NCBI GenBank assembly: GCA_000708835.1
Contig: DF237102.1
Span: forward strand, 62,001 to 126,000
Reading direction: 5' to 3'
Length of the DNA: 64,000 nucleotides
From: Klebsormidium nitens
Lineage: Eukaryota > Plantae > Klebsormidiophyceae
The notes under the pieces: model-generated
Told to the model about the DNA's origin: nothing
What the model saw: only the letters and a program-made list of their open reading frames with translations
The model's database searches: none
Position numbers and translations under genes: made by a program
Shown: positions 1,826 through 20,094 of the stretch, in pieces
How positions within the stretch are numbered: position 1 is the first letter of the stretch
Layout of the letters: each line of letters opens with the position of its first letter

Positions 1826-3537
1826 TAAGAGCCTCGTGAAGAGCAAAGCCTTTGTGACGCTTAAGTCTGCAGTGCTGCAATATAAGGAGATATCGACATA
1901 AATTCTGGTCAGTCTTTTGAGTTGGGAGGCAGCGTCCACGCAAACATGTATATGTAACTTGTTTAGAATCAAGCCAGGTTGATCGGCCTGTGGTCTACAT
2001 TGGAAAGTCTACAGGGGCGATTGCTTGCATCCTAAATTTAGGCTTCTAAGGACCTAGGACGGGTGCGGCCGACTTCGGTTGCTTCCATTGCTGAACGGGC
2101 ACTGTTCGAGAGTGATTTCGGACGCGTGCTTTCATTGTATACTGTCTGAATCAACCTGATAATATCCACAATCTTTGAATCCATTCCCAGAATATGCGCT
2201 CTACCATACGATGGGAAAGAACAGGCAGCGCGGCGGCTTTAGTAAATGATGCACATGTTCTCACCAGTCCGAGCTGAGTCCTATACTCGAACAGTGTTCG
2301 TCGAGTGACGACGGTCTAGATACGACTGGGAAGCACACCACTTATCCAAGCTTCAGCTTATAATATTGCTCAATCAAGTGAGGAGGATGACGCATCCGAC
2401 GCCGTGTGCATCCTTTGGCTTGATGCGGTTGTTGATGAGCTCAGGGCATACATTTGGTCACAAGGGACTACGTTCTCGACGCGCTCAGCCGAATAGTGTT
2501 ACATGTACAGAAGGTGGAGCTGCGCAGTGCTTCGAGGGTATACAACGCAAGTAAACGGTTGGAAATCACCTCGAAGGGTCACTTCGTGCGTGTCTCAAGA
2601 TCGTTCGAACACCGTTGTTGCAACTGATGCAGCTTGGACGGTTGCCAGACTGCAGGCTCAACTAAAATACAATTCGCGGTGAAGCTGTGCCAGTACGTAA
2701 TGGAGCGCTGCGGCCCACCTCTTCACGGCTCATGGCGATCGTTGATGCGTGAATCGTCACCAACATTGAACGAACTCCGTCATTCAAATTATTGTAGTTG
2801 CGGTAGTTCGCAGCCTACCGTGGTATGTTAGAAACTTTGGTAGAACATTTGAGTCGTCAACTTTGGCATGGTCGCAACAACCATGATCCTATCTTGGCAA
2901 TGCACATGTAGGAATCGGAGCATAGATTGATGGCGCGCTCATATATCGGATCGAGCTCCAATGCACGGCAGATCGAACGCATCAGCGCATGTATTTGACC
3001 AATGATCAGCTTGCTAGATCTTCTCGGCCGCGGCCTTCGTCTGAAATCATGTGCAGGACTACCCATGTTTTACAAGCGTGGCGCAGCGTCGTCCTCGATC
3101 TTTTGAAGAGACGATGGTGAATAAAACCGACTTAGAACCTTGGCAAATTTAGCCTAAACTGTCGATAATGAGACTATTCAAAGAAAATAGTCTTTAACAT
3201 GCATGATAAACAATATGGGCAGGCTAAGTGCACTGTAGATCTTCGTCCTCTGGATTTCAACAAAAAGTTGACACTGCGACTTCCACGTTCGGCCGAGTCT
3301 TAGCTGCAGAAAGTCGGACTCGCTTATATGATGCGCGGGCTAAGTTGGACTCAGGGTGGGGCCCTCTGTTCTGCACGAAACGTTACCCAGTTCTAAGTTT
3401 TCTCGTCCGCTTGCTGACCCCTTCGAGTATGTACGGATAGGCCTGGAACTTTCACAAACAAACTGCTACGCTCAGATTGAGGTATAATGATTGAATCAAA
3501 CCCGCTACGCTTATATAGCTGTCATCTCACTATGTAC

Positions 3538-5995
3538 TCATTGCTGTTGAAGAGCGCGGGCTCTCCTTCCTGCGTCGTTTGCTTCTTTGGAAGTCCGCCT
3601 TGTGCACTCAAGGATGGTCTTCTCAGACACAACAAAGTATGCACCCACCATGCCTACAACAAGCAAGACAAATGCTTCGCACTCATTTCGGCCTTTATAA
3701 GAATCTCTGATCGTCAATCTTCCATTCGGTTTGGACCAGCTTTTCAAACTTTCTCTCAAGCAGTCGAGCATACAATGATGAGGGAAAGTCACCACAAGCG
3801 CAATCCTCCGACGGTATTTGAACTGCCGCACCATCGCAAATCGTGCTTCAAAATTATTCCACACAGAGAATATTGCCAGCGAACGCCTCTGGGAGCCAGG
3901 CCTTCAAATCGAGAAAGAAAACCAACATCGAAATGCACTAAGCAAGCGGAGCCAAGGACGCAACGCGAATAGTATCCTGCACTTTTCGTCAAACCTGTCT
4001 GGGCTGAAGAGTCGGAATCTGGCGCGAGTCACGAGAACTCCGAAGTTTTTGATGCACGGATCTGGTCGGTGAGAATTGGAGACTTCAATATGGTACACAC
4101 TACTACTTGGGGTTTGACCCGGCCAAATTAGTACCCAACATCGATTTGGAAATTGTGTCACACCCAATCTTCCGAATGCCGACCGACAGGTTCAGAGAAG
4201 TCCACCACCTCTTCAACGAGAGTGGAGGATATTGTGGAAGGGCCCCTTGTGACTGAGTTTTCTTGCTCACTTCCGAAGCAGCTCTGCAATCGAGTGGATT
4301 GAAGCCAACATAGCCAACACAACAAGATCGAAAAACGCTTTGATGATTCGCTGACACATTTGGCTCCCTCTGGCTCCCTCTACTGGTGAAAGAACATTGC
4401 CCAGACTCAATGAGTATGTATCATAGGCCAGAGAAGGGTTGATGCGCTGCGCACCATCATGAGAAGGTTTCGGAGCGCTGATCCACTCGAACGGTTAGAT
4501 TAGCTCCAAGTACTTTGAACATGATCGTTGTATCAAAAGGTGCGTAACTATCGCTGTTTCGAGCAAGAACACCAAGTATTGAACAAGCTCCTGAGAAACG
4601 CATGCTGAGGCTGGGAAGCAGTCACACTCCCGTACACACCATTGTTCCCATCATATCTTGACAAACACGAATTGGAGAAAGTCGGACGATTGGCCCTGCC
4701 TTTATTGAGCTTCTGTAACCGTGACATACAACCTCTTCCGAACATATTTCAAACACCGAGGTTGAGGTTATCATATCGCTGTGTCAGAGCCAGCATGGAC
4801 ACCATACTTGGCCATCGAAGTCCAAGCATTATGATGCTTCGACAGTTTGGTACTCAGATGGAAGTTTCCGTTCAGGCATTCTTCCCTTTGTTTCAGGAGT
4901 TTGTCCCGGCGATTAAACATTCAATTGATTGCTAGCGGAAGAGCAGTCTCAAGATTTGTTACAGAATGACCTTAGTCTAGCCCCATCATCCAGAGAGTAA
5001 ACAAAGCTGCTGAAGCTAAGCTGAGAAGCTCAGCAACTCAATGGTATCTTACCTGCACAGGGGATAAGAGCTCTGCCGGTGTAGTTGAAGTTATGTGCGA
5101 ACCAGGGGGAGAAGCGGACCGCTGCCAACGTGCCTGCTAGGGCCAAGCCCCCCCAAAGTGCTGCAGCTTCCAGACCCTTGTAGACGCCAGCTGCAGCAGT
5201 CGACAAGAAGGTTGGAACGAGAGAGTTGTCTGCAGATTCTTTTGCAGGAAGTAGTAAGGGATTGTGTCAAATAGAATGCTGCTGGATCCTGTCCAGTAGC
5301 AATGTCTTGCTGATCCAGAGGAAGACGTGGCTGAGAGACCAGATGAGGGGTCTTGTGGTATACTCGGGCGTTAGCCCCCTTTTTCAGGGATTTGACGACC
5401 AACATTTCCATAGGGAAACTGATGTGCATTCCTTTTCTGATACAAATAACGCACAATTGAGAGTGAGACGAGACAATCCGTCTCAAATTACTGTAGACGA
5501 CCCCACACGGGTGGATTGCCTTGCATGAATCTGGCAATTGACTCTCGATAAGCATGAACCTGGCGGCAACGCAATGCTGCCGGTGGCTGCATTTGCAATC
5601 TGATAGCAGGCACTCTAGACAGCCCCTTCAAGACATGAGTACTAGGGTACAGGACAGCCAACCTTCTGTTGAAGTAATTGCAGCCCCAGCGACCAATTTC
5701 TGCATGCATCTCATGCAAGCCACCTTTGCAGACGTCTTCTGAACATATACTTTGAGGCAGACAACAACAAGCACGCGAATAATCTGAATAATTGCATTCA
5801 GAAACACTCTGGCTGGGCTGGACCCTCACCATCTGTACACTGCTTCACCCTCTGCTTCTTCTCCTCCGCCTCGGACAATCCATTCCTCTCCACAACCTGA
5901 GGAATGAACTGCCCCGATCGCTGCAAAGTTGCTGCATGCGTGCCAGCAGACCGCGCTGCCTCTTGGCGTTCTAAGAATTCCGACCAAAGCCCCAT
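3538..5995 (-). CDS. ENOD93: Early nodulin-93 (ENOD93)-like small membrane protein, 3 exons, ~139 aa
   Basis: Exons 5995-5830, 5190-5053 and 3653-3538 join in phase with GT-AG ends. Product: ...EEKKQRVKQCTDAGVYKGLEAAALWGGLALAGTLAAVRFSPWFAHNFNYTGRALIPCAGMVGAYFVVSEKTILECTRRT.... This matches the recalled ENOD93 pattern (EGxxAGxKAA; TLAxVRxxPWAxxNLNxTxxALI; AYFIVADKTIL). The start codon is less certain. Confidence 0.85.
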
Positions 5996-6595
5996 GCTGT
6001 CTCCCAGGAATGTGGTGCCCTATGCCAGTAAGTTACAGAATGCTGCTGTGAGCACCTTGCGAAGCGTGAACCAGCGCCTTTCACCTCGAAAATCAGCTTC
6101 TAGCATCGCTTGCATGCAGCTTCTTCTTCTCAGCTAAGGGAGTTGATCCCCGGGGCCACGTTTAACCGAACGGCTGTACCCGCGGAACCGTTTCTCGACT
6201 CCGGCGATCAACCAGTCATGATAGCAATCCTGAGGCTCGAGCAAGCAAGTTGAACCGTCTGACGAGGTGTGAACCGGCACTAAGGACTGATCGGTACAAG
6301 TAGAGTTGCAGAGAAACTTTGCAGTTCACAAGACAGCGCATTTTGCCATTGGCGCGCAGCTAGCTAGCAGCTCGCACTTGGCGCCACTCCAAATGGGGCT
6401 AGCAGTGGCACTGCTTGATCACAATCTGCTCAAGCATTTTACTTTATTTTGAAAGTTGTGCTGGAACGGCAAAACGCAACAAGAGGAGCTCCTGCTTTGA
6501 GTGCGGGTATTACACGTTTCGTCGACAGCCTAGAGAAGCTGAAAATTCCGAGCTACAGGCAGTGCCATGGTAGGGCGGGTCTTTGAGCAATTGAA

Positions 6596-9500
6596 ATGCG
6601 GTCCAATCTGCTGAAGCGGGTGGTGGCGCTGCAACCAAGCCCCAAAATGCTGCAAAGCACTCTCAAAAGTTTTCAAAACGATTGCATTCATGTAATTCCC
6701 CCAGCCGATGCAGTACCCTCCTTGTCCTATGCTCAACCTCTTCTCGCTGGCTGTACTGAAAAATTACATTCCGTTTCCTGTAAGAGCTTCCCTGTTGATC
6801 TGCAACAACACAAGCCAGCTCATAGGGCACAATGCGCAGGTGCAGGTCCTCTTACAACTTTTCAAGCTTGTGTCACTGAGCGGACAGCTTTTGCCCAGAG
6901 CAATGTGGGGCCCGGAAGCTGGCAGAGAAATCATAAGCAGTGGTTAAATGTATCACCACGAAGATTGAATCACTTCTGTCGAAGCTTCACTCGTTTTCCA
7001 GCAGCTACAAAACGTGGGAGCTTATTGGAGGCTCTTGAGGCAGAGAGCAATCTTTCTGACCAGTTCAAAATTCTGACAGTTGCTAGGGGAGGTGAAGCAT
7101 GGTCAGATCCATCTGAAGATAGTGGAGCACAAACACTGCGAGCTGGCAGCTGGAAGGCATTGACCCTTGGCGCCTGGGAGGAGCATTTGTTGTACTATCG
7201 CTCTTTCTATGATCTTTTTGTCCAGCATGCTGCTCGAGCCTCAGAGTCTTTGTGGGGGCGTGGAGAAGGGCCCTTCTCGGATCTAGAGGTGAGATAGATT
7301 GGTCACTTTAAGCTTAGATGGAGAAGACGATATCGCTGCAAAGCAGCTCTGACGGGATCCAGTTGCGATGAAGAGAGGACTGCCAAAGCTAAGCCCAGCT
7401 TGACCTTGCAGATTGAGCAAACCTTAGAGCATTCAAGCATAGGGCTTAGCTGCTCTGAAGGAGCCCAATGAAAGCACCTGAGATTTGTGTAACAAGTGCC
7501 TCTCATGCCAATACTTTTGGAGAACTTCTTGAATCGACGAGTTAGAGTAGTAGGCAATCTATCCACGTGTCTCTGCGCGTTTCATCAGATATGAGGTTAC
7601 ACTCAACCAGCTTTCGGTAGCACTGGTTGCTGGTCTGAGGATCCTAATTGTCAACCATACAAGTAGATGTTATCCAGTCTTTATCAACAGAAACGCACTG
7701 TCACCAACTCAATTGGCAGCTGATGTCACCCTGCGAATCAACAGTCATGATCTCCTCCTCTCCTCTGCAGGGAGGTCTTTCCTGGTTGTCTCCTGACCTT
7801 GGCACCCGTGCCCAGACGCTTCGTCAGAGCCGCGGCGGGACAAAACTCTTTGGATTCATGATGTGCTTTCCGGACTCTCCGGACTCATTTAAAGCAGTGT
7901 CAGATCTGATGCTGTCCGTGTTTCTGGTGGACGACTGGATCGAGCAGCAAGGCCCCGACGAAGCGGAGCAACTGGCTGAATGGTGGAGGACGATAGCTAT
8001 CCAGAGGTGCGACTCATTCCGGACTGAGCCCAAGCCTCTTTATGGTCTTCAGAATCCCTTGTCGATTGTAGCACCTTTCGAACTTTGCGACATAAGTTTT
8101 CAAGATCTGACTTCGATCTGACGTTCCTCAAAAGTCGCTTCCGGTTCCTCTCTTTCGTTTCCTCCTTTGGATCAATATCATACGCGCTCAGTGCTTTGTC
8201 TCAAGGTAGATTCGCCCGTTCGGTTCTGAAGTTCTGAGAATCGAGATGAGAAATATCACGTACATTCCGAAGCGGGAGACCTTTGTAGAAATGTGGCTGA
8301 AAAGTCGTTCTAAGATGGCGCTCACGGCTAGGGAGTCGCCAAGAATGTCGGCTTACAATCTCCAGCACCAGAGCTGTAGGAAACAAATGAAGGTTAAGCG
8401 AGGCGATCCTGACATTCACTGCCTCCGCAAAAGGCGTCACTCGACGATCGTGCGGAGCGCCTTCTCGAAGAGCTTTATCTCCGAAAAGGCTGGCCCCTTC
8501 CGCAAGTGAAAAAGTATCCACAAACTTCACAAAATGCTTCTCGACTTCGACCTGCAGTGTAACGTCCGCGTTTTTGCTTGCAACAAAGTTTACGATGCCA
8601 TGCATACTGCGAACGGGCTTTTCGCCTCTGCACGAATCTTTCCATCGGCCAAATTTCGATGGCGGAAAACATATGCAGACTCACTTCTTCACCGAAAGCA
8701 CTAAACACCTTTCCCTTCCGCTATTCTCAAACCGCTTCTTGCAAAAGTTGCCACGCAAACCCTCGAAGGCAGAGCTTTCCATCCGATTTGTCCGCTGGCC
8801 TGCCCTCAAAGGGCTCTAACTTACTCGCGCTCAGTAAAGATCCCTCTGGTCTTCAACCAGCTTACGATCAGAATAACGACTCCCTGGGTTCCCAAGACTG
8901 GCAGCCTTCAATCGTCTTTCACAAAGCGCGCCTCCCAGTGACACGTGGCAGCTCTTCATTTGCAGCGACGCCGGCGTGGCTTTTGACGCCCAGCGGGCGT
9001 TCGAAGCTCTGCCTCCGTCTCTACTTGCTGACGCCAGCATGCGAAAAGCGGGCGAGCTGTGCTGCTCTGCGCTGACGTACTTTCTCGCGCGTGCTGCGCG
9101 AGTGGACCCCGCATGGTTCGGGCGGTTTGCATGGGCCATTCACGAGTACGCTAAGGTGAGACGTCTCGCTCCCTTCCCGTTCTTCCGTCCCTTTCCCTCT
9201 GCCTCCGTCCTTCCTTTTTCTCTCGCTGTTATTGTTCCTTTCCAAAGTTAACGTTCTTCGTTGCGTCAATCCCTAATGTTCGCTTTTCTGACAATTGCTC
9301 GTTGCTTTACTTTCGATGGTGCTCTTGAAGTCTTTGTCTCCAATATCCACACTCGAGTGTCGGTGTCCACTTAGCCACAGAGCCGTGGTGATTGGCGGGA
9401 ATGTAGACGGCCTCACTCCGAGGCATACCTAGTCCAGTTCCACAAATGAACCACGGTATTCTGCCAGAGCGCTTGCACCATGCCTGTTGATGTTCTTTTC

Positions 9501-12122
9501 TGCTGCCTCAGAATCTCGTAGTGTCTCTAAGCGTGATTCGTAGGCAGTCCCTGGGAGCAGGAATCGACAAGGAAATCTTTGAACCGACCATCCACGCACT
9601 CCGCACACCTGCCCACCCTAAGTCTTCTGCCGAATCCCATCCGTTCCACGAGCCATAACCCAATGCTAGCTAGCTTTATTATGCTACCTAAGCCTAACCC
9701 AAACCTTAACCGACCCAAACCAAATCTAAACCTATTTGCCTCAGGCCGTCGCTTCCGAGATCACGGCGGCGCGCTCTTTCCTGGAGACGGGAACCCACCC
9801 CGCCGTCGTGGAGTACTTCGCCTACCGCTGCTTCAGCAGTGCCTTCATCCAGCTGGCAGTCCTGGCGGCCCTGCAGCAAGGCCTCCGGTGAGCACATGAC
9901 GTCACCTTTCCACCTTTCCTCATATCCGCTGACGTCCTTGCATCGTTCGCGTCCTAAGCGCAACGACTTTCTCTCCGCTGGCACTCTTTTACGGTCCTGT
10001 ACTAGGCCTCCGGAGAGCGCATCGTGACGTCACTCTGCTGCCGATTTCCAACGTGAAAGTGGCGCTGACGTCAGGTGGTACAGAGCACTGCCGGCGCCTG
10101 GCCGCAGCCCTCCCGGCAAGGCCTTTCTGTGGCCACCCGTCAATCAGTCCGCCAAAAGCGAATGCTGGCGTCAGGCTGACATCGTCCGGCTGAAGTATGG
10201 AGGCTTTTCAAGCTTTCCGGTTCTCTTTACAATCTTGGAGACTTCGTTATAGGAGCTTACCGGATGCTTTTTAAAATCGAGGCGGCTTGTCGGGCCCCTG
10301 TGACTTGCGCAGTTGTGCCACATGTTGACACGAGCTTGACTACCAGTGTTTCGCCCACACCCCAACCTGCGATTTTCGATAACGCGTGAATGAAGCCTTT
10401 CTATCATATTTCTGGGATTCTCGTGTAATCTTCGGCAAGCCCTCACGCTCTGATGGCGTCTCTTCGTCACTTTCCCTTTTGCGAATGGACGTCACTCTGC
10501 CGAATACACCTTTGAGCTTGGAGTTCGAGTTCCGGAACGTAGAAACTTTGGTGACAATCTAGTCCCATTCTGCCCAAACATCTGTAATGACTTAAACTGT
10601 TGAGCAGGTTGAGCGACGCGCTTGGCCGCTGGTGTGCGCGCGCACCTACTCGCGCGCTGCTGCAAAACTGCATGACAAAACGTTCCGAACTAAGCCGCAG
10701 GTTTCGGAGGGAGCTAGCTATAACTTTCATTCGCCATCACAGTGGATCCCACTCCTGGGGTCTCTCGCGCTTCATTGAACAACGAACTCACAGCTTGATT
10801 GGGTCGAGGTATGCGCGCGCAGGTTGAGCGACGCGCGCTTTGCCGGGGCGCGGCCGCTGCTGGTGTGCGCGAGCCTGCTCGCGTGCTGCTTCAACGACGC
10901 GTTCGTGGCGGCCAAGGACGCGGCCGCGGGGCAGACCAATCTCACGAAAGCCGTGGGGACGAGGTGCGCCGTCGACATGCATAACGCGCTGGTTGACTGC
11001 CTCTGCGAGGAGTCCGAACGTTGGTTGGAAGACGCTACGGAGGTGAGATGCCTTTTTACAGTGACCTCTATTCCTCAGCATCAAATCAAACCTCTTCACC
11101 TAGTTAAGGCTTTTACCTTGAGTTTGAAGGGAAGTGTGAAACTCAAGTGGCAGAGGCTGCGGCCACGATAGGAACATGTTTTGTCTATGTACAATCTGTA
11201 GCCCTCGATGCCACGTCATCCATGGACTCTCTCCGCACAAACCGCGTAACGACAACTCAATGTGAGGAACTAGTACTTAGATTCTTAGGCAGTTAACTTT
11301 GCAGGAGCTGCGGTTTGGGATCGTCGCACGTTGGCTGCATATTTCCTTGCAAAATAGCCGCAGCTCTGCTTCAGGAGTTCCGGAAGAGCAGAACCATGTG
11401 GCATGCATGTGCCTTTTTGGGCTCGCTTTTTCGGCTCCCTTCTCTAGCGATCAAGGAGGGGCGTCTGGGAACCTGTTTTGCACGGACCAGAACTGTAACG
11501 CTCAGCACGAAACGTGTCTCCATTCGTCCTTCAACAAAAGTGGTCAAATCCTGATTCTAGGGCGGGAGATCAAGCCCCCGCGCGTGTGACGAGAAACAAG
11601 TGTCTGAATCCGCCAGTAGCGTAGTTTGTACGTGACAAGCACGGGTTCAATGTTCTACGGAGGCGCTGAAAGTTCCCTTGTTCCTGTGAACAGTCTTACA
11701 CAAACTTCACCGGTTGTATAGCTCCGAGTATTGGGACAGCGTCCTGTAGAGTTCCGGGGTCAGAATCCGAGATCCTGTGCCGACCGTGACAATCCGTCTC
11801 AGTCACTTCAAGAGCTCCCGACTTGATTGCCAAACGCGTAAATATCTCTTCGACGCAGGGCGACGACTCGCAGCGCTTCGTCGACTTATTGAAGGCGAGC
11901 ACTTTCGGGTGCAACCTGTGGCACAACATCTGCCCTCGGTACCGCAAGTATTTGGAGGTGACGTGTCAACCGTTCGGCGTTATTGACGGCCCTAACGGTC
12001 TGCTGAGCGCTGGGAATGGAGCACTCAAGCAAGAAATGCGGGAGCTTGTGCACACACTGGCATCTAGTGAATCCAGTGCTCCCAGATTTTCAAATGCATG
12101 TGAGGGGATACACTTGACATAA
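6596..12122 (+). CDS. Microbial-type class I terpene synthase-like protein (MTPSL-like), 6 exons, ~581 aa, long N-terminal extension
   Basis: Exons 6596-7288, 7771-8006, 8966-9155, 9745-9887, 10823-11042 and 11859-12122 are phase-consistent (1746 nt). Motifs occur in the expected order: FPDSPDSFKAVSDLMLSVFLVDDWIE (DDxxD/E), VEYFAYRCFSS (pyrophosphate-sensor Arg), NDAFVAAKD (NSE/DTE-like), QTNL...AVDMHNAL, and GCNLWHNICPRY (WxxxxxRY). The 5' start is uncertain, and the last exon might be spliced at 11957 instead of reading on to 12122. Confidence 0.8.
9595..9732 (+). repeat. Degenerate copy of the C-rich dispersed repeat, in terpene synthase-like intron 3
   Basis: ccgcacacctgcccaccctaag...cccatccgttcc followed by cctaacccaaaccttaac. 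It resembles the core at 51960-52010. Confidence 0.5.
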
Positions 12123-12427
12123 GTTTCTGTGTCCATCTTTTCATTGTTACTTATTGTCATCAGGCACGTTGTGAAGGATGCTTACAGCGGTGAGGTATAG
12201 TAGTGAGAAGGTTCCACTGAGCACGCCTTATTTTGGATTGATGATTGGTCAAGTAGCTGGATCTGCTCGAGCTTGTTTGGAAGAATGAAGGCGTGGGATA
12301 AGGTGTCGTGCTGCCGGCAAGGTGTCTAAGAGAGTATCAATACTTATGGTCTGCTGAGGACTTCAGAACGCGTCTTTGCAATAAAACTCAGGAAAAATAT
12401 AGTAAAGCCGAGATAATAATATGGTGA

Positions 12428-12520
12428 CCGCACTGGGACGGGTAGGGTTAGTTTGGTGGTTAGACTGGGTACGGGTGCGGAGCGGGTGTATTTTTGGGTT
12501 AGGATTTTTAGTGTTAGTCG
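12428..12520 (-). repeat. C-rich dispersed repeat, intergenic copy
   Basis: The reverse complement, ctaacactaaaaatcctaacccaaaaatacacccgctccgcacccgtacccagtctaaccaccaaactaaccctacccgtcccag, aligns by eye over ~90 bp with 51926-52011. Confidence 0.8.
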
Positions 12521-14522: not shown

Positions 14523-17500
14523 ATGGCGCCCCTGACGGTGGCCATCCCGGGTGGGGACAGCAATGCCGCTGGCGAAACTGCAGCATACAACGTCAGGATC
14601 TCGCGCAATGGGAAGCCCTACGTGGTTTGGTCCAAAAGTGCGTCAGCAACACCGGCTTCCAGCACACAAAGCAGCAGGGCGGAAACACCTGCTGGCAGCA
14701 CACGGGCCTTTCCTTTGACCACCAATGCCAGCATTGGTTATGTGCCCCCTAGTTGGGTGCAAAGGGGGCAATCGGTAAATAGTGCTAGGAGTACGGGCAC
14801 GTTTGACCTGCCAGGGAACGTGCTGTCTGCAACGGCGAAAAGTGTGTCTCGGCAAAGCCAAGAGGATGCTCTGAGGCTCATCGGACTGTCCTCGGGCAAT
14901 GCTGAGGTGTCCGCGCAGAAGACTTTGAGTTCTACCATAGAGAGGGAGCAGAATCTGCAACAAAGGGAGGAGTATGGCACTAGAACGGCAGCAGCACTCA
15001 GCCAAGACGTGGACAAGCCTTTTGTTCTTGGAAAACTACCAGTTTTTGCCAAGATGAATCGACACGAGACTGGCACGAGGCTGTCGGACTCTGCCCCTGC
15101 TTCTCAGATAGCGATGGATAGGCAGGCTTACCGCTCAGAGGCTTTGTCAGTGGGACAGGAGAAGGCGGTAAGAGGTGCAGATGCTTTCTTCCAGTCTGGG
15201 GCCATTGAAGCTGCTTCGGAAAGGAATGAGAGGAGTTCAGAGGGGCAAAATGGGGCGACGGACCTCGTCTGTGACGTCTGCATCAACAAACATATGGTTG
15301 AGTCCAAGCAGGAGCAGCAAAGGCGTGAGAGGGAAGAGCAGCACAGACAGGCGGCTGAAGCGAGCTTCAGAGCGCAAAGGGCTACGGTTGAGTGGGAGGC
15401 GAGGATGGTGGAGGAAAGAGTGAAAGCCGTTGAGCAGGCAAAGGCGGTGAGTTCTTGTCTCCTTCAACCTTAGCTTTTGATCAGACCTGCAAAGAGTGTA
15501 AGTTGCACTCGCTCCGAAAGAACAGGTAAATTTTGCAGACCTCTGGACACTGAGTCCCCTTTTGACACTTGAAAAATACCCTACCGGTCTTGACCAGTTT
15601 CTCGTGACCAGGGACTCTTTGCGGATGTTGAAGTCAAGATCCTTAGACGCGGTTGCTGCAGCTGAACTCCATCAGGACGATGAACCCAGGATAGTACTTT
15701 GCGTTTATTAGTTCTCTGCGTCTACATCAAAAGTTCTAGGAGTCTGTCTTCGAATTACTCCTTTCTGTGACCAAGATACTAACGCACGGCATGGTCCGTG
15801 CCTCGTTGCTTGCAGGAACGTGATCAGTACATGGTGCAGAAAGAGCAGGCACGCCAAGAGTACGTGGCCAGTCCACGTTATGAGCCAGAAGGGCCAGCAG
15901 GCATGGTGTTCAAGGGTAGCACTCCCAGAACAGCAGCTGAAGAGCAACACGCTCGATACAAAGAAGAGCTTGACCGGCAGGTCAGGACATGTCCTTCCCT
16001 CGTGGATATTGAAAGTGTTCGATTCCACATCAGTTGCGTACCTTGTTTCACTTCAATTTCAGAAAGGCCTTGGTTCCTGAGATGCTGCTCACGGGGAGCA
16101 CATATTCGCAACCCTTAATCATACGTTCTTGAAAGCAGCTCGAGGTCGCCTCTGTTCAACTGAAAGATGCGCCCTCAATCCGCTTCAGATTCCAATATGT
16201 AGCAGCACCCGCTTCTTTGAGAAGAGGACCCGTACAGCTCAGTTTCTTTTGGAGGATTTTCCGGTTCGACATGCCACCTGATGGTGTCCCTTGCTTCTTA
16301 CCAGGTGGCGTTCAAAAGTAGATTAGCGGCTGAAGAGGCTGCAAAAGAGCACCCACTAGGGAACATCCCCGTACCTCTGCAGACCAGTCGGCTGGAACTG
16401 GATGCTTATGTCGAAGCTCAACACGAGAGCTACTCCGACGCTCTGGCGAAGCAGGTGGGCCTGTCCTGTCAAGATTATTTATCGGCAGCTCCTCATGGAA
16501 AAGTAATGAGAGTTGACGAGTCTTTCTGACGAGCACTTTCAAATCAACCGCGACAAATCCCAAGGATGTGAAACATTTTTCAAACACTTGCATAGACAGG
16601 TTAGACAGATTCAAAGCAAGTCTGGAGCCAACCACGGCAAATCAAGGTTCGGGAGACCGCACTGCTTTAAGTGAATCCCAGATCTCATTTCCTCTTCTTG
16701 CGCAGGTGCTTGAAAAGCAGGCCATGCGGGCTGCAGAGAAAAGTGCTCCTCATCCTTTGGGCCGATCTAACATGGTAGTCGTGACAAACACCCCGACTCG
16801 TCAAGCTGAGCTGAGCAATCAGGCGGCTTTTCGAGGTGCACTTGCGCAGCAGGTACGCGGAAGAGGAATGATTAGTTTGCAGTAGTGTCGCGTAGGCATC
16901 AATCAACAAGGCCAAGTGGATAATGAATAGCATCATCAGCATCTTGTGACGACGAGATACTTCGATCCTGGCTCTCCCTTTGCTGTGTAATTAGCTCATT
17001 CTAGTTGAACAGCTGAGAGAATTGCAGCGTCCTGCTAATACAAGTGGACATACCGCGTACTTACAGAGTCCCCTCTCTCTGCAGCTCAAGGAAAAGGAGG
17101 TGCTCGAGCAGCAGAACGGTGAAAGGTCTCACCCTCTCGGAGACGTCCCGACAAGCCCGAGGTTCACTGTTGTTGACTTTGACAAGGCCAAACTCGACCA
17201 CCAAATGGCCCTACGAGCCGAGCTGGACTGCCAGGCAAGTGGCCAATTGACACTAAGTCTTTCAAATTCAACGGATATACCACTGAAGTAAAAGTTACAT
17301 CTTCCAAGGAAGAAGAGGCTAATAGCTTCTTCTCGTTCTAGAAGACTTTCGACTGCATGCAATCGCCAAGAGGTTCTGCTAGCAGCCGGTGGCAGCAGTC
17401 TCGGCCAGAGGTTGGAAATGAGTTCGCAGCGACATTTCCCTGAGCATGGGAGCTTGGACATATATATGTCTCCTTATTTTCAGATCTCTTGGATCCAGGT

Positions 17501-20094
17501 ATCAGAGAAAAAGATGCGCAAGGAGATGGAGAAGACTGCCGCTCATCCACTCGGTCAGACGCTGCTGAGGAGTGAAGGGGAGCCTTTCGGATCAGAGAAT
17601 CTGCTTTTGCAACGGAAGGCAGAGTACAGAATGCTTCTTGATGAGCAGGTAACGACTACAGAGCTTGACTTACACTGCACATCAAATTGACCAAGAGGGA
17701 GCGCAGACTCCGTACCGGGAACTGTCTGTTACTACAGAGCGATCTGAGAAGTGCAGTAGCCAAAACGCTTGTTTAAAGAAGCGCAGACTTCAGCGCAATC
17801 AATCAGCAAAATTGACACCGTGACTCTGGAAGAAGCAGGTGCTTTTGACAGTAATCGTGCCTCTTTCAATCCACGTTCGTGACGGAGACAGCTAAGGTAC
17901 TCTCACCTGAATCGAGCGATCCTCTCCTTTCACTTCAAGCATCAATTCTTAATTAGAGTAAGCTGGCCCTGACAATTTCAATCTTCTTTTTCAGGTAGCG
18001 CAGAGAGAGGCCTGGAAGCGCTTGACAGAGAGTGGGGCCCATCCATTGGGGGACGAGCCCGTCTGGGGCCGTGTCGACAGGGATCAGACTGCCAGAGAGC
18101 ACGATAAATTTGTGCATGAGAAGACCAAGAGCTACCAGGAGGTCTTGGCAGCTCAGATCGCGGAGAGAGAGAGGGAGAAACAGGCGCGATTCATGCAGGA
18201 GCAGGCGGCAAGAGAGGAGCAGATTGCCAAGGACCGGCGAGAGGCGCAGATAGCCAAGCAGGAGGAGATGACAAAGACGTGAGTCGATGTAAAAGGTTGA
18301 TGAGAGGTTCTGGTGCACATTCAAAGGATGTCCTTCACTTGCTTAGGCTGATCCGGCTGCATCCGCTTCGATCATGCCGTTTCTCTGGCTGCTGTCGGAG
18401 ACAATGAACGGTGGTCAGCTGTGCTTGGTAGTGTAACGGAGAGGCTCCATGAGCAACTAAGAGTCGATTACATTCATCCTTTTGCAGGTATGCTCAGAAG
18501 ATGGCGTTGCGTGAGGCCTGGCTCAAGGAGGTATAACTCAATCAGAGCCTCGCATCTGAGTTGAAATGATACATCGCTTGATTCGACTTTGCATTTCATG
18601 CCTCACAAGGCAGCAAAGCCGGCATCTGCGGTTGGAAATGATTGCGAAGAATCAACTATGCTGCTGTGGCTTGCATTACAACCATGTCTGGTTTCCTGTC
18701 TGACATAGGGTTTCATTCTTCATCCTTTGCAGGTTCAGGCAAAAGACGAAAAGAAGAAGCAGGAGCGCCTTGCCAAACCAGAGCTTGCGACTCAAACTCG
18801 TGAAATGGCAGCGGCAAGGTGAGGAAAATGCTCCGTCTTACCCGACCTGTCCTCTGCGTTAGGAACACTCACTGTAACTTCCCACGCCTATGATTTCTAA
18901 GCCCTTTTGGCACGCTTCAAGTCAGATTCTAGTTCAAAAGAAGAGATTCAGTACGGAATCTCTAATGTTTAACGCGTTCCGGTACTGTCCAGAGCTTTCC
19001 GGTACTGACTGTCATCCTTCCTGCAGGATAAATTTCAGCGGACCTCCTTACGACAGCGTCAAAAAGGAGGCCCTGGTGAGAGACTAGTCACACCAGTTTT
19101 CCCCGCCACTTTCTATGCAAGCGCCGAGGATCTCGCGCCTTCCGACAATTTGTTTTCGTATCCTAATGCGTGGATCGCTACTCCCTGAATCTGACGCGTT
19201 GTCAGTCAGCGAGATGTCTCTGAATGCGAAAGACGAAACTTTTAGACGCGTTCGAAGGCTTTCAACTGCTGAAGAGTAACACCACACGACTGAGTTCTCA
19301 TTGATACGAAACAATGGACGCAAAATACCTACTTCGCATTGAACGGACCCAACAACCTGACTTCAATTTATCTTTACAGAAACATGCTCTGGAGAGCCAG
19401 ATCGCCGAGAAGAAGAACCAGAAGCGGCTCGAGAGGCAGGAGAGCCGGTCTCACTATCAGGAGTGGTGCGGCGACGTTTGTGATCAGAGCGTTGCAGGGA
19501 CAATTCGGGCCATTGCCAAGGGAGCGTCCTCTGGTGAGTAAACAGTAAACACTGCGGTTTGACGGAATTTGATGATCAATGCTCTATTGAGATGCTTATG
19601 TGCCCTCTTGAATGCACTGCATACAAGTCGAACACGTTGGCCTTGTTGCGATCACGAGTTTCACCAACCTTTCTGTGCCCCACTGTATCAAGAGAAAGGG
19701 GGAGACTTTCCAACTTTCGGCTCGAGTCGCTCGATTGTCTTGATTTGATAACGGAAAATGGTGGACGGATTGCACCACCTGCCTAGCATTCAGGAGACGT
19801 TTCTATACCATTCTGCTGCAAACTTAAACAGATACTGAGAATGTCTATTTGGCGGAGTCGGCCAATAGTCTGTACCTGTAAAACGGGTAGTCTATTTGAT
19901 TTTAGTAGGGGACGGGTCCTACTAAGTCTATTCTCAGTATGCAAAGCCTTGTGCCCTGTTGCTTCGCAGGATTGACGGGCGGAAAGAGCGGGTACCTCGA
20001 CAACTACCTCAAGTGTGTGGAGTGCAAGAGGACTGTCCCAGCTAAAAGTCTGGCTCCCTGGAAAGGTTCGAGAACCTCTATAGTTGCCAACTGA
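14523..20094 (+). CDS. Coiled-coil protein with five exon-encoded HPLG repeats and two CxxC motifs (possibly CCDC81-like or ciliary)
   Basis: Exons 14523-15446, 15816-15980, 16305-16454, 16706-16852, 17085-17234, 17499-17648 and 17995-18278, then exons starting near 18488, 18733, 19027, 19380 and 19969, with the stop at 20092-20094. Phases are consistent. The protein is E/Q/K/R-rich, with CDVC in exon 1 and CVEC in the last exon. Confidence 0.75.

Follow-up and report, generated by a model that had tools for sequence, protein, structure and literature searches.

Microbial-type terpene synthases and the Klebsormidium nitens locus

Microbial-type terpene synthases (MTPSLs) are operationally defined as proteins whose best hits are bacterial or fungal terpene synthases (TPSs) or the SmMTPSLs, and which group with them in a tree (PMC12513842). 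Their genes contain from zero to seven introns in Selaginella (PMC6779861), and they have been stated to be absent from green algae and to have been gained by land plants after these diverged from green algae (PMC6779861); one charophyte species is said to have an MTPSL (PMC6681836). Moreover, the main survey of the origin of plant TPSs mentions significant hits in Klebsormidium flaccidum, which were judged to be without TPS features (PMC9169658), and a survey from 2023 counts five genes with the PF03936 domain in Klebsormidium nitens, without gene identifiers (PMC10600500). The locus considered here is an intron-bearing TPS-like gene of K. nitens, whose coding sequence runs from 6596 to 12122 on the forward strand of a stretch of 64,000 nucleotides, referred to as the window (assembly GCA_000708835.1, contig DF237102.1, positions 62,001 to 126,000). 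The initial annotation of this DNA had presented such genes as largely absent from green algae, a statement that can indeed be found in the literature (PMC6779861), but the novelty that it derived from this was overstated in view of the K. nitens genes already counted (PMC10600500) and the K. flaccidum hits already mentioned (PMC9169658). It also proposed that the gene may go back to an early acquisition in streptophytes or to an independent transfer, with introns gained later.

The evidence assembled below suggests, with a probability of about 0.68, that this is a nuclear, transcribed gene of six exons which encodes a class I terpene synthase fold of the PF19086 type, made of a single alpha domain and preceded by a presequence. 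The protein would be best classed as terpene-synthase-like, its metal-B site being a variant one, rather than as a proven cyclase. Although TPS-like genes in K. nitens are on record, a literature search found no description of this gene, of its family, of its confirmed structure or of the variant triad.

Gene structure and transcription

The joined coding sequence comprises 1746 nt and encodes 581 residues with a single terminal stop, the phases of the introns being 0, 2, 0, 2 and 0 (Table 1). Public sequencing runs were compared with positions 6400-12350 of the window for evidence of splicing, and four runs from four studies each provided one contig of 2.3-2.4 kb that skips exactly the five introns, with 0 mismatches and 0 indels. 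Contigs without the five introns are derived from RNA and, hence, the gene is transcribed and spliced. The six in-phase exons of the initial annotation are thereby borne out at every GT..AG junction, as is the remark that the list of open reading frames (ORFs) holds only fragments of the gene, since the plus strand between 6596 and 12122 yields exon-sized pieces and nothing longer. The guanine-cytosine (GC) content of the gene resembles that of the flanking genome, and an exact look-up of the exon-1 ORF matched no record.

Table 1. Features of the K. nitens TPS-like gene, in positions of the window
Feature	Position	Strand	Extent	Remarks
5' untranslated region (UTR)	6337-6595	+		Approximate start, from contigs that begin 37-63 nt before position 6400
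Exon 1, coding sequence	6596-7288	+	Residues 1-231	Residues ~156-231 are the start of the conserved domain (HLLYYRSFYDLF...)
Intron 1	7289-7770	+	482 nt	GT..AG, phase 0; junction in 4 runs
Exon 2	7771-8006	+	Residues 232-310, final codon split	Asp-rich DDWIE at 7930-7944
Intron 2	8007-8965	+	959 nt	GT..AG, phase 2
Exon 3	8966-9155	+	Residues 310-373	
Intron 3	9156-9744	+	589 nt	GT..AG, phase 0
Exon 4	9745-9887	+	Residues 374-421	G..P...EY..YR..S segment; putative pyrophosphate-sensor Arg401 at 9826-9828
Intron 4	9888-10822	+	935 nt	GT..AG, phase 2
Exon 5	10823-11042	+	Residues 421-494	Modified NSE triad NDAFVAAKD at 10893-10919; conserved HN..VDC.CEE
Intron 5	11043-11858	+	816 nt	GT..AG, phase 0
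Exon 6, coding sequence	11859-12122	+	Residues 495-581 and stop	Stop TAA at 12120-12122; WHNICPRY at 11919-11942, including the RY dimer
3' UTR	12123-12520	+		End estimated from contig ends, ~12456-12520 (~110-170 nt past 12350)

Relatives of the gene and selection

Database searches and family scans were run exon by exon, and the spliced protein was used in local alignments. When exon 2 was compared by phmmer with 1.84 billion cluster representatives, four true matches were obtained, all of them exon-sized fragments (P0002, with 78% identity, P0004, P0005 and P0007), and neither a full-length protein nor, at E<1e-3, any bacterial, fungal or plant terpene synthase was recovered from this set; four further matches (P0001, P0003, P0006 and P0008) were discarded as repeat-protein artefacts. 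Relatives were found on eukaryote-like contigs, namely an 89-kb metagenome contig from JGI (L001/L002) and contigs from Logan assemblies (L003, L004, L005 and L006), on which tblastn of the spliced protein locates the exons in order. Splice-aware models of L001 and L004 consist of six exons with GT..AG borders and share with the K. nitens gene the positions and phases of all five introns, and identity among the three proteins is 39-45% over some 405 aligned positions.

L005, the closest relative, aligns with the window over exon 2 only (78% nucleotide identity), its introns being unalignable. In this exon, the ratio of nonsynonymous to synonymous substitutions (dN/dS) is 0.155 over 75 codons, with a dS of about 1.0, which therefore indicates purifying selection. 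Overall, these sequences suggest a small family of very divergent members that is maintained by purifying selection. Two metagenome scans, with profiles of exon 5 and exon 6, returned no relative, and hence no cDNA-like or intron-less one, exon 5 had no tblastn match among plasmids, and no synteny was detected between the window and L001 outside the gene itself.

The L001 contig also encodes a retroelement-like zf-CCHC protein and a fragment of Tra1_ring (TRRAP), at 3407-4279 and 17458-17853, which fits a eukaryotic nuclear contig.

Probable membership of the terpene synthase family

The assignment to a family comes mainly from the relatives. Three of their exons match, in colinear order, a single one of the 24,736 families of Pfam, PF19086 (Terpene_syn_C_2): exon 4 of L004 over profile positions 89-121 (E 6.9e-5, 23.1 bits, the cut-off being 23.7), exon 4 of L001 over 91-122 (E 3.6e-3, 17.5 bits), and exon 5 of L004 over 140-179 (E 6.3e-3, 16.7 bits). 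The plant model PF03936 reaches an E value of 0.14 at best, on one exon of a relative.

As a comparator for whole-domain alignment, geosmin synthase genes were fetched by their published NDLFSYQRE motif and confirmed as PF19086, and both their N- and C-domains were aligned with the three-member family formed by the K. nitens, L001 and L004 proteins. A local hhalign comparison with the C-domain covers 306 columns with a score of 35.3, while column shuffles of the same comparison score 16.8 +/- 2.7 and none of the 60 reaches the real value (z 6.9); this control was relied on rather than the probability reported by hhalign, because both profiles are thin. The alignment superposes DDWIE on DDHFLE, EY..YR on EYIEMRR, ND..V..KD on NDLFSYQRE and WHN...RY on WHMRSSRY, and pairs Arg401 with the first Arg of EYIEMRR.

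Feature neighbours in the ESM-Atlas, taken as leads and not as tests, point in the same direction for two non-overlapping exons. Among the 100 nearest named clusters of exon 5 alone, 60 belong to PF19086 and 11 to TRI5, the best PF19086 cluster having a score of 0.93 and 192 shared features; for exon 2 alone, a 'Delta(6)-protoilludene synthase family' cluster comes at the top (0.93), followed by PF19086 clusters. In addition, exon-wise family profiles give weak matches in the PDB (E 0.3-2), and terpene synthases appear, at the positions to be expected, among the matches listed for three of the four exons: the exon 2 profile matches a diterpene synthase and 10-epi-cubebol synthase (residues 70-119 in both), the exon 4 profile sesquisabinene synthases (residues 362-424), and the exon 6 profile a terpene synthase (residues 292-317). 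Narrow hidden Markov models built on geosmin synthases scored too low on the spliced proteins to mean anything in hmmsearch, and a word search with the geosmin synthase profile returned partial geosmin synthases only.

Regarding domain architecture, exon 1 matches neither PF01397 nor any other Pfam family, and the beta-alpha and gamma-beta-alpha arrangements of plant enzymes are not seen. In these respects, the gene resembles a plant MTPSL, being nuclear and intron-bearing, with a putative alpha domain and no signal of the plant N-terminal (beta) domain. Both the microbial type and the single alpha domain that had been proposed from the letters of the sequence agree with these results, the former through the better match of the relatives' exons to PF19086 than to PF03936, the local profile alignment and the language-model neighbours.

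Putative catalytic motifs and their spacing

The motifs of a class I synthase stand in order along the 581-residue protein, with DDWIE at residue 285, Arg401, NDAFVAAKD at 445 and WHNICPRY at 515, and their spacing is nearly constant in the three members, from Arg to Asn (44), from Asn to RY (76) and from DD to Asn (158-161). The Asp-rich DDxx(D/E) motif reads DDW[IL]E or DDCIE in five sequences of the family; the sensor Arg precedes the triad by 44 residues, the expected distance being about 46, and is invariant in the three members; and the RY dimer (R521-Y522) lies within WHNICPRY, RYR being invariant. The triad reads NDAFVAAKD, NDIFPATKD and NDIMAAAKD, with N, D and K invariant. DDWIE, the sensor Arg and WHNICPRY are therefore present where they had been first noticed, but the element then described as NSE-like is non-canonical and lacks the Ser/Thr.

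In the relatives, exon 4 reads G(R/K).PTL.EYLRYR..SIG, a typical helix-G segment of microbial-type terpene synthases. The corresponding stretch of K. nitens (GTHPAVVEYFAYRCFSS) keeps the E-Y pair, the Arg and the Ser.

Probable N-terminal presequence

In K. nitens numbering, homology among the three members begins near residues 156-175. The N-termini that precede it are 156, 107 and 72 residues long, are unrelated to one another in sequence and are in all three cases acid-poor and rich in Ser, Thr and Ala, that of K. nitens being also basic. The initial annotation had described an N-terminal extension of about 230 residues, possibly a targeting peptide; however, the last ~75 residues of exon 1 are conserved in the relatives and form part of the domain, and the non-conserved extension thus has about 155 residues and not 230. 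Its poverty in acidic residues and its lack of conservation remain compatible with a targeting peptide, and its composition suggests that this ~155-residue presequence is an organellar, probably plastid, transit peptide.

Putative mechanism

According to the proposed mechanism, the gene is constitutively transcribed, the first ~155 residues of its product would serve as a transit peptide, and residues ~156-565 would form an ionisation-dependent class I fold of the bacterial and fungal type. DDWIE, together with the N and D of N445-x7-K-D453, could hold the Mg2+ cluster, and Arg401 and the R521-Y522 dimer could bind the diphosphate group of a prenyl substrate; ionisation would then set off a cascade of carbocations within the helical pocket. 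Since the NSE triad has lost its Ser/Thr ligand, the protein may bind metal B in a different manner or perform an unusual chemistry.

Alternative explanations

Several observations weigh against a terpene synthase. No single exon of K. nitens matches any model of Pfam or NCBIfam up to an E value of 10, phmmer searches of the PDB with exons 2 and 5 return nothing relevant, the comparison with the N-domain of geosmin synthase is weak (score 22.2, z 2.3, with 2 of 60 shuffles reaching it), the probabilities given by hhalign itself are low (24% and 1%), and a literature search found no terpene reported from Klebsormidium. Within the catalytic region, the published consensus of the triad is ND(L,I,V)xSxxxE (PMC5082573), and all three members have V, P or A at the Ser position and Asp instead of Glu; moreover, exon 4 of K. 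nitens is more diverged than that of its relatives, having lost the G/R..P.L.EYLRYR consensus that they keep, and the stretch between DD and N exceeds that of bacterial cyclases by about 20 residues.

The altered triad and the divergence of exon 4 would be expected if the protein had the fold of a terpene synthase without being a conventional cyclase. Its rewritten triad, whose centre offers no conserved ligand across the three members, would then leave it as a pseudo-enzyme, as a binding protein, or as an enzyme whose chemistry or substrate is of another kind. This explanation has a modest but real probability. Against it stand the purifying selection on exon 2 and the invariance, with fixed spacing, of DD..E, of the sensor Arg, of the RY dimer and, within the triad, of the N, the last acidic residue and the Lys that precedes it. 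Moreover, bacterial cyclases that carry DDxxE or DDRAE, or an NSE triad altered to Pro or Ala at its first position, are known to be functional (PMC5082573). A protein outside the terpene synthases, either an unrelated helical one with motifs arisen by chance or a prenyltransferase or another enzyme of the isoprenoid synthase fold, would account for the absence of a significant family match in the K. nitens exons, for PDB matches that all lie above E 0.3 and for the low hhalign probabilities, but is quite improbable in the face of three independent, colinear exon matches to one Pfam family, the z of 6.9 against shuffles and the TPS-dominated ESM-Atlas neighbours of two non-overlapping exons. 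A prenyltransferase, in particular, was considered unlikely: instead of the two DDxxD motifs of isoprenyl diphosphate synthases (the first and second Asp-rich motifs, FARM and SARM), there is a single Asp-rich motif and a second site of the N-D type with an RY dimer, and the exon-wise scans gave no signal for PF00348 or for the polyprenyl synthase and squalene/phytoene synthase families. As for contamination or a recent insertion from a bacterium or fungus, the microbial nature of PF19086 could suggest it, but it was rejected as extremely improbable, for the five spliceosomal introns have been spliced out of the RNA-derived contigs in four studies, the GC content is that of the flanks, and the same intron positions recur in divergent homologues, one of them on an 89-kb eukaryotic contig. 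That exon 2 matched no microbial protein at E<1e-3 in the 1.84 billion representatives also makes a recent transfer unlikely, although it argues against a recent transfer only. A class I terpene synthase fold of the PF19086 type therefore stands as the preferred assignment.

Additional features of the transcript and introns

In the same sequencing runs, short contigs of low depth (3-6, compared with 22-47 for the mRNA) fall in introns 3, 4 and 5 (9509-9711, 9900-10785 and 11059-11305, respectively) and could come from precursor RNA before splicing, from introns that were retained or from carried-over DNA. Moreover, the transcribed 5' UTR contains an upstream ORF of 15 codons at 6567-6614 (MVGRVFEQLKCGPIC), which begins with an ATG at 6567, 29 nt upstream of the main ATG, ends with a TGA at 6612-6614 and runs across the main ATG in a different frame; it is a possible element of translational control.

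Intron 4 holds decayed copies of its own borders at 10004-10022 and 10604-10643. Positions 10604-10621 are identical (18/18) to the acceptor and start of exon 5 (10819-10836), and 10625-10643 are about 89% similar to 10856-10874, while 10004-10022 are about 89% similar to the end of exon 4 and its donor (9879-9897). In L005, the beginning of exon 2 recurs at 620-688 (RWLSPDLGAHAQELQ, followed by a stop), some 300 nt upstream of the exon proper. Because this copy occurs in the closest orthologue, echoes of exon starts within introns may be a trait of this lineage.

Significance and comparison with known terpene synthases

An expressed, selected and intron-bearing family of TPS-like genes in a charophyte offers a way to test whether specialised terpene metabolism predates land plants, and to ask whether a class I synthase works with a metal-B triad devoid of Ser. 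A further-reaching proposal, which the sequences allow to be put forward only as a doubtful one, is that this gene would be the founding member of a clade, within the Klebsormidium lineage, of plastid-targeted, alpha-only and catalytically active terpene synthases whose NSE triad lacks Ser. If true, microbial-type TPSs and a volatile or specialised terpene chemistry would have existed in streptophyte algae before land plants, which would contradict the view that MTPSLs entered after the green-algal split. The value of the finding is tempered by the fact that TPS-domain genes of K. nitens have already been counted (PMC10600500).

Compared with the bacterial and fungal class I synthases of PF19086, such as the two domains of germacradienol/geosmin synthase, the K. 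nitens protein shares a putative single alpha-helical domain, DDxxE, a sensor Arg about 45 residues before N-D-x-x-x-x-x-(K)-(D/E), and W-H-x-x-x-x-R-Y near the C-terminus. The profile alignment is colinear over about 300 columns, yet identity is about 20% and the K. nitens exons remain below every family threshold. Unlike those enzymes, its family has replaced the Ser of NSE by V, P or A and the Glu by Asp, and has a DD-N span about 20 residues longer, and the K. nitens gene carries five introns and a presequence of about 155 residues. With the five genes of the 2023 survey (PMC10600500), of which it may be one, it has in common the genome, the superfamily, the presence of introns and transcription, whereas its exons miss both PF03936 and PF19086.

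The gene is not closely related to the MTPSLs of non-seed land plants, as no annotated plant MTPSL matched exon 2 in the 1.84 billion representatives. Nevertheless, it resembles the MTPSLs of Selaginella, Marchantia, hornworts, ferns and red algae in being microbial-type, alpha-only and nuclear in a photosynthetic eukaryote, its host being a charophyte and not a non-seed land plant or a red alga.

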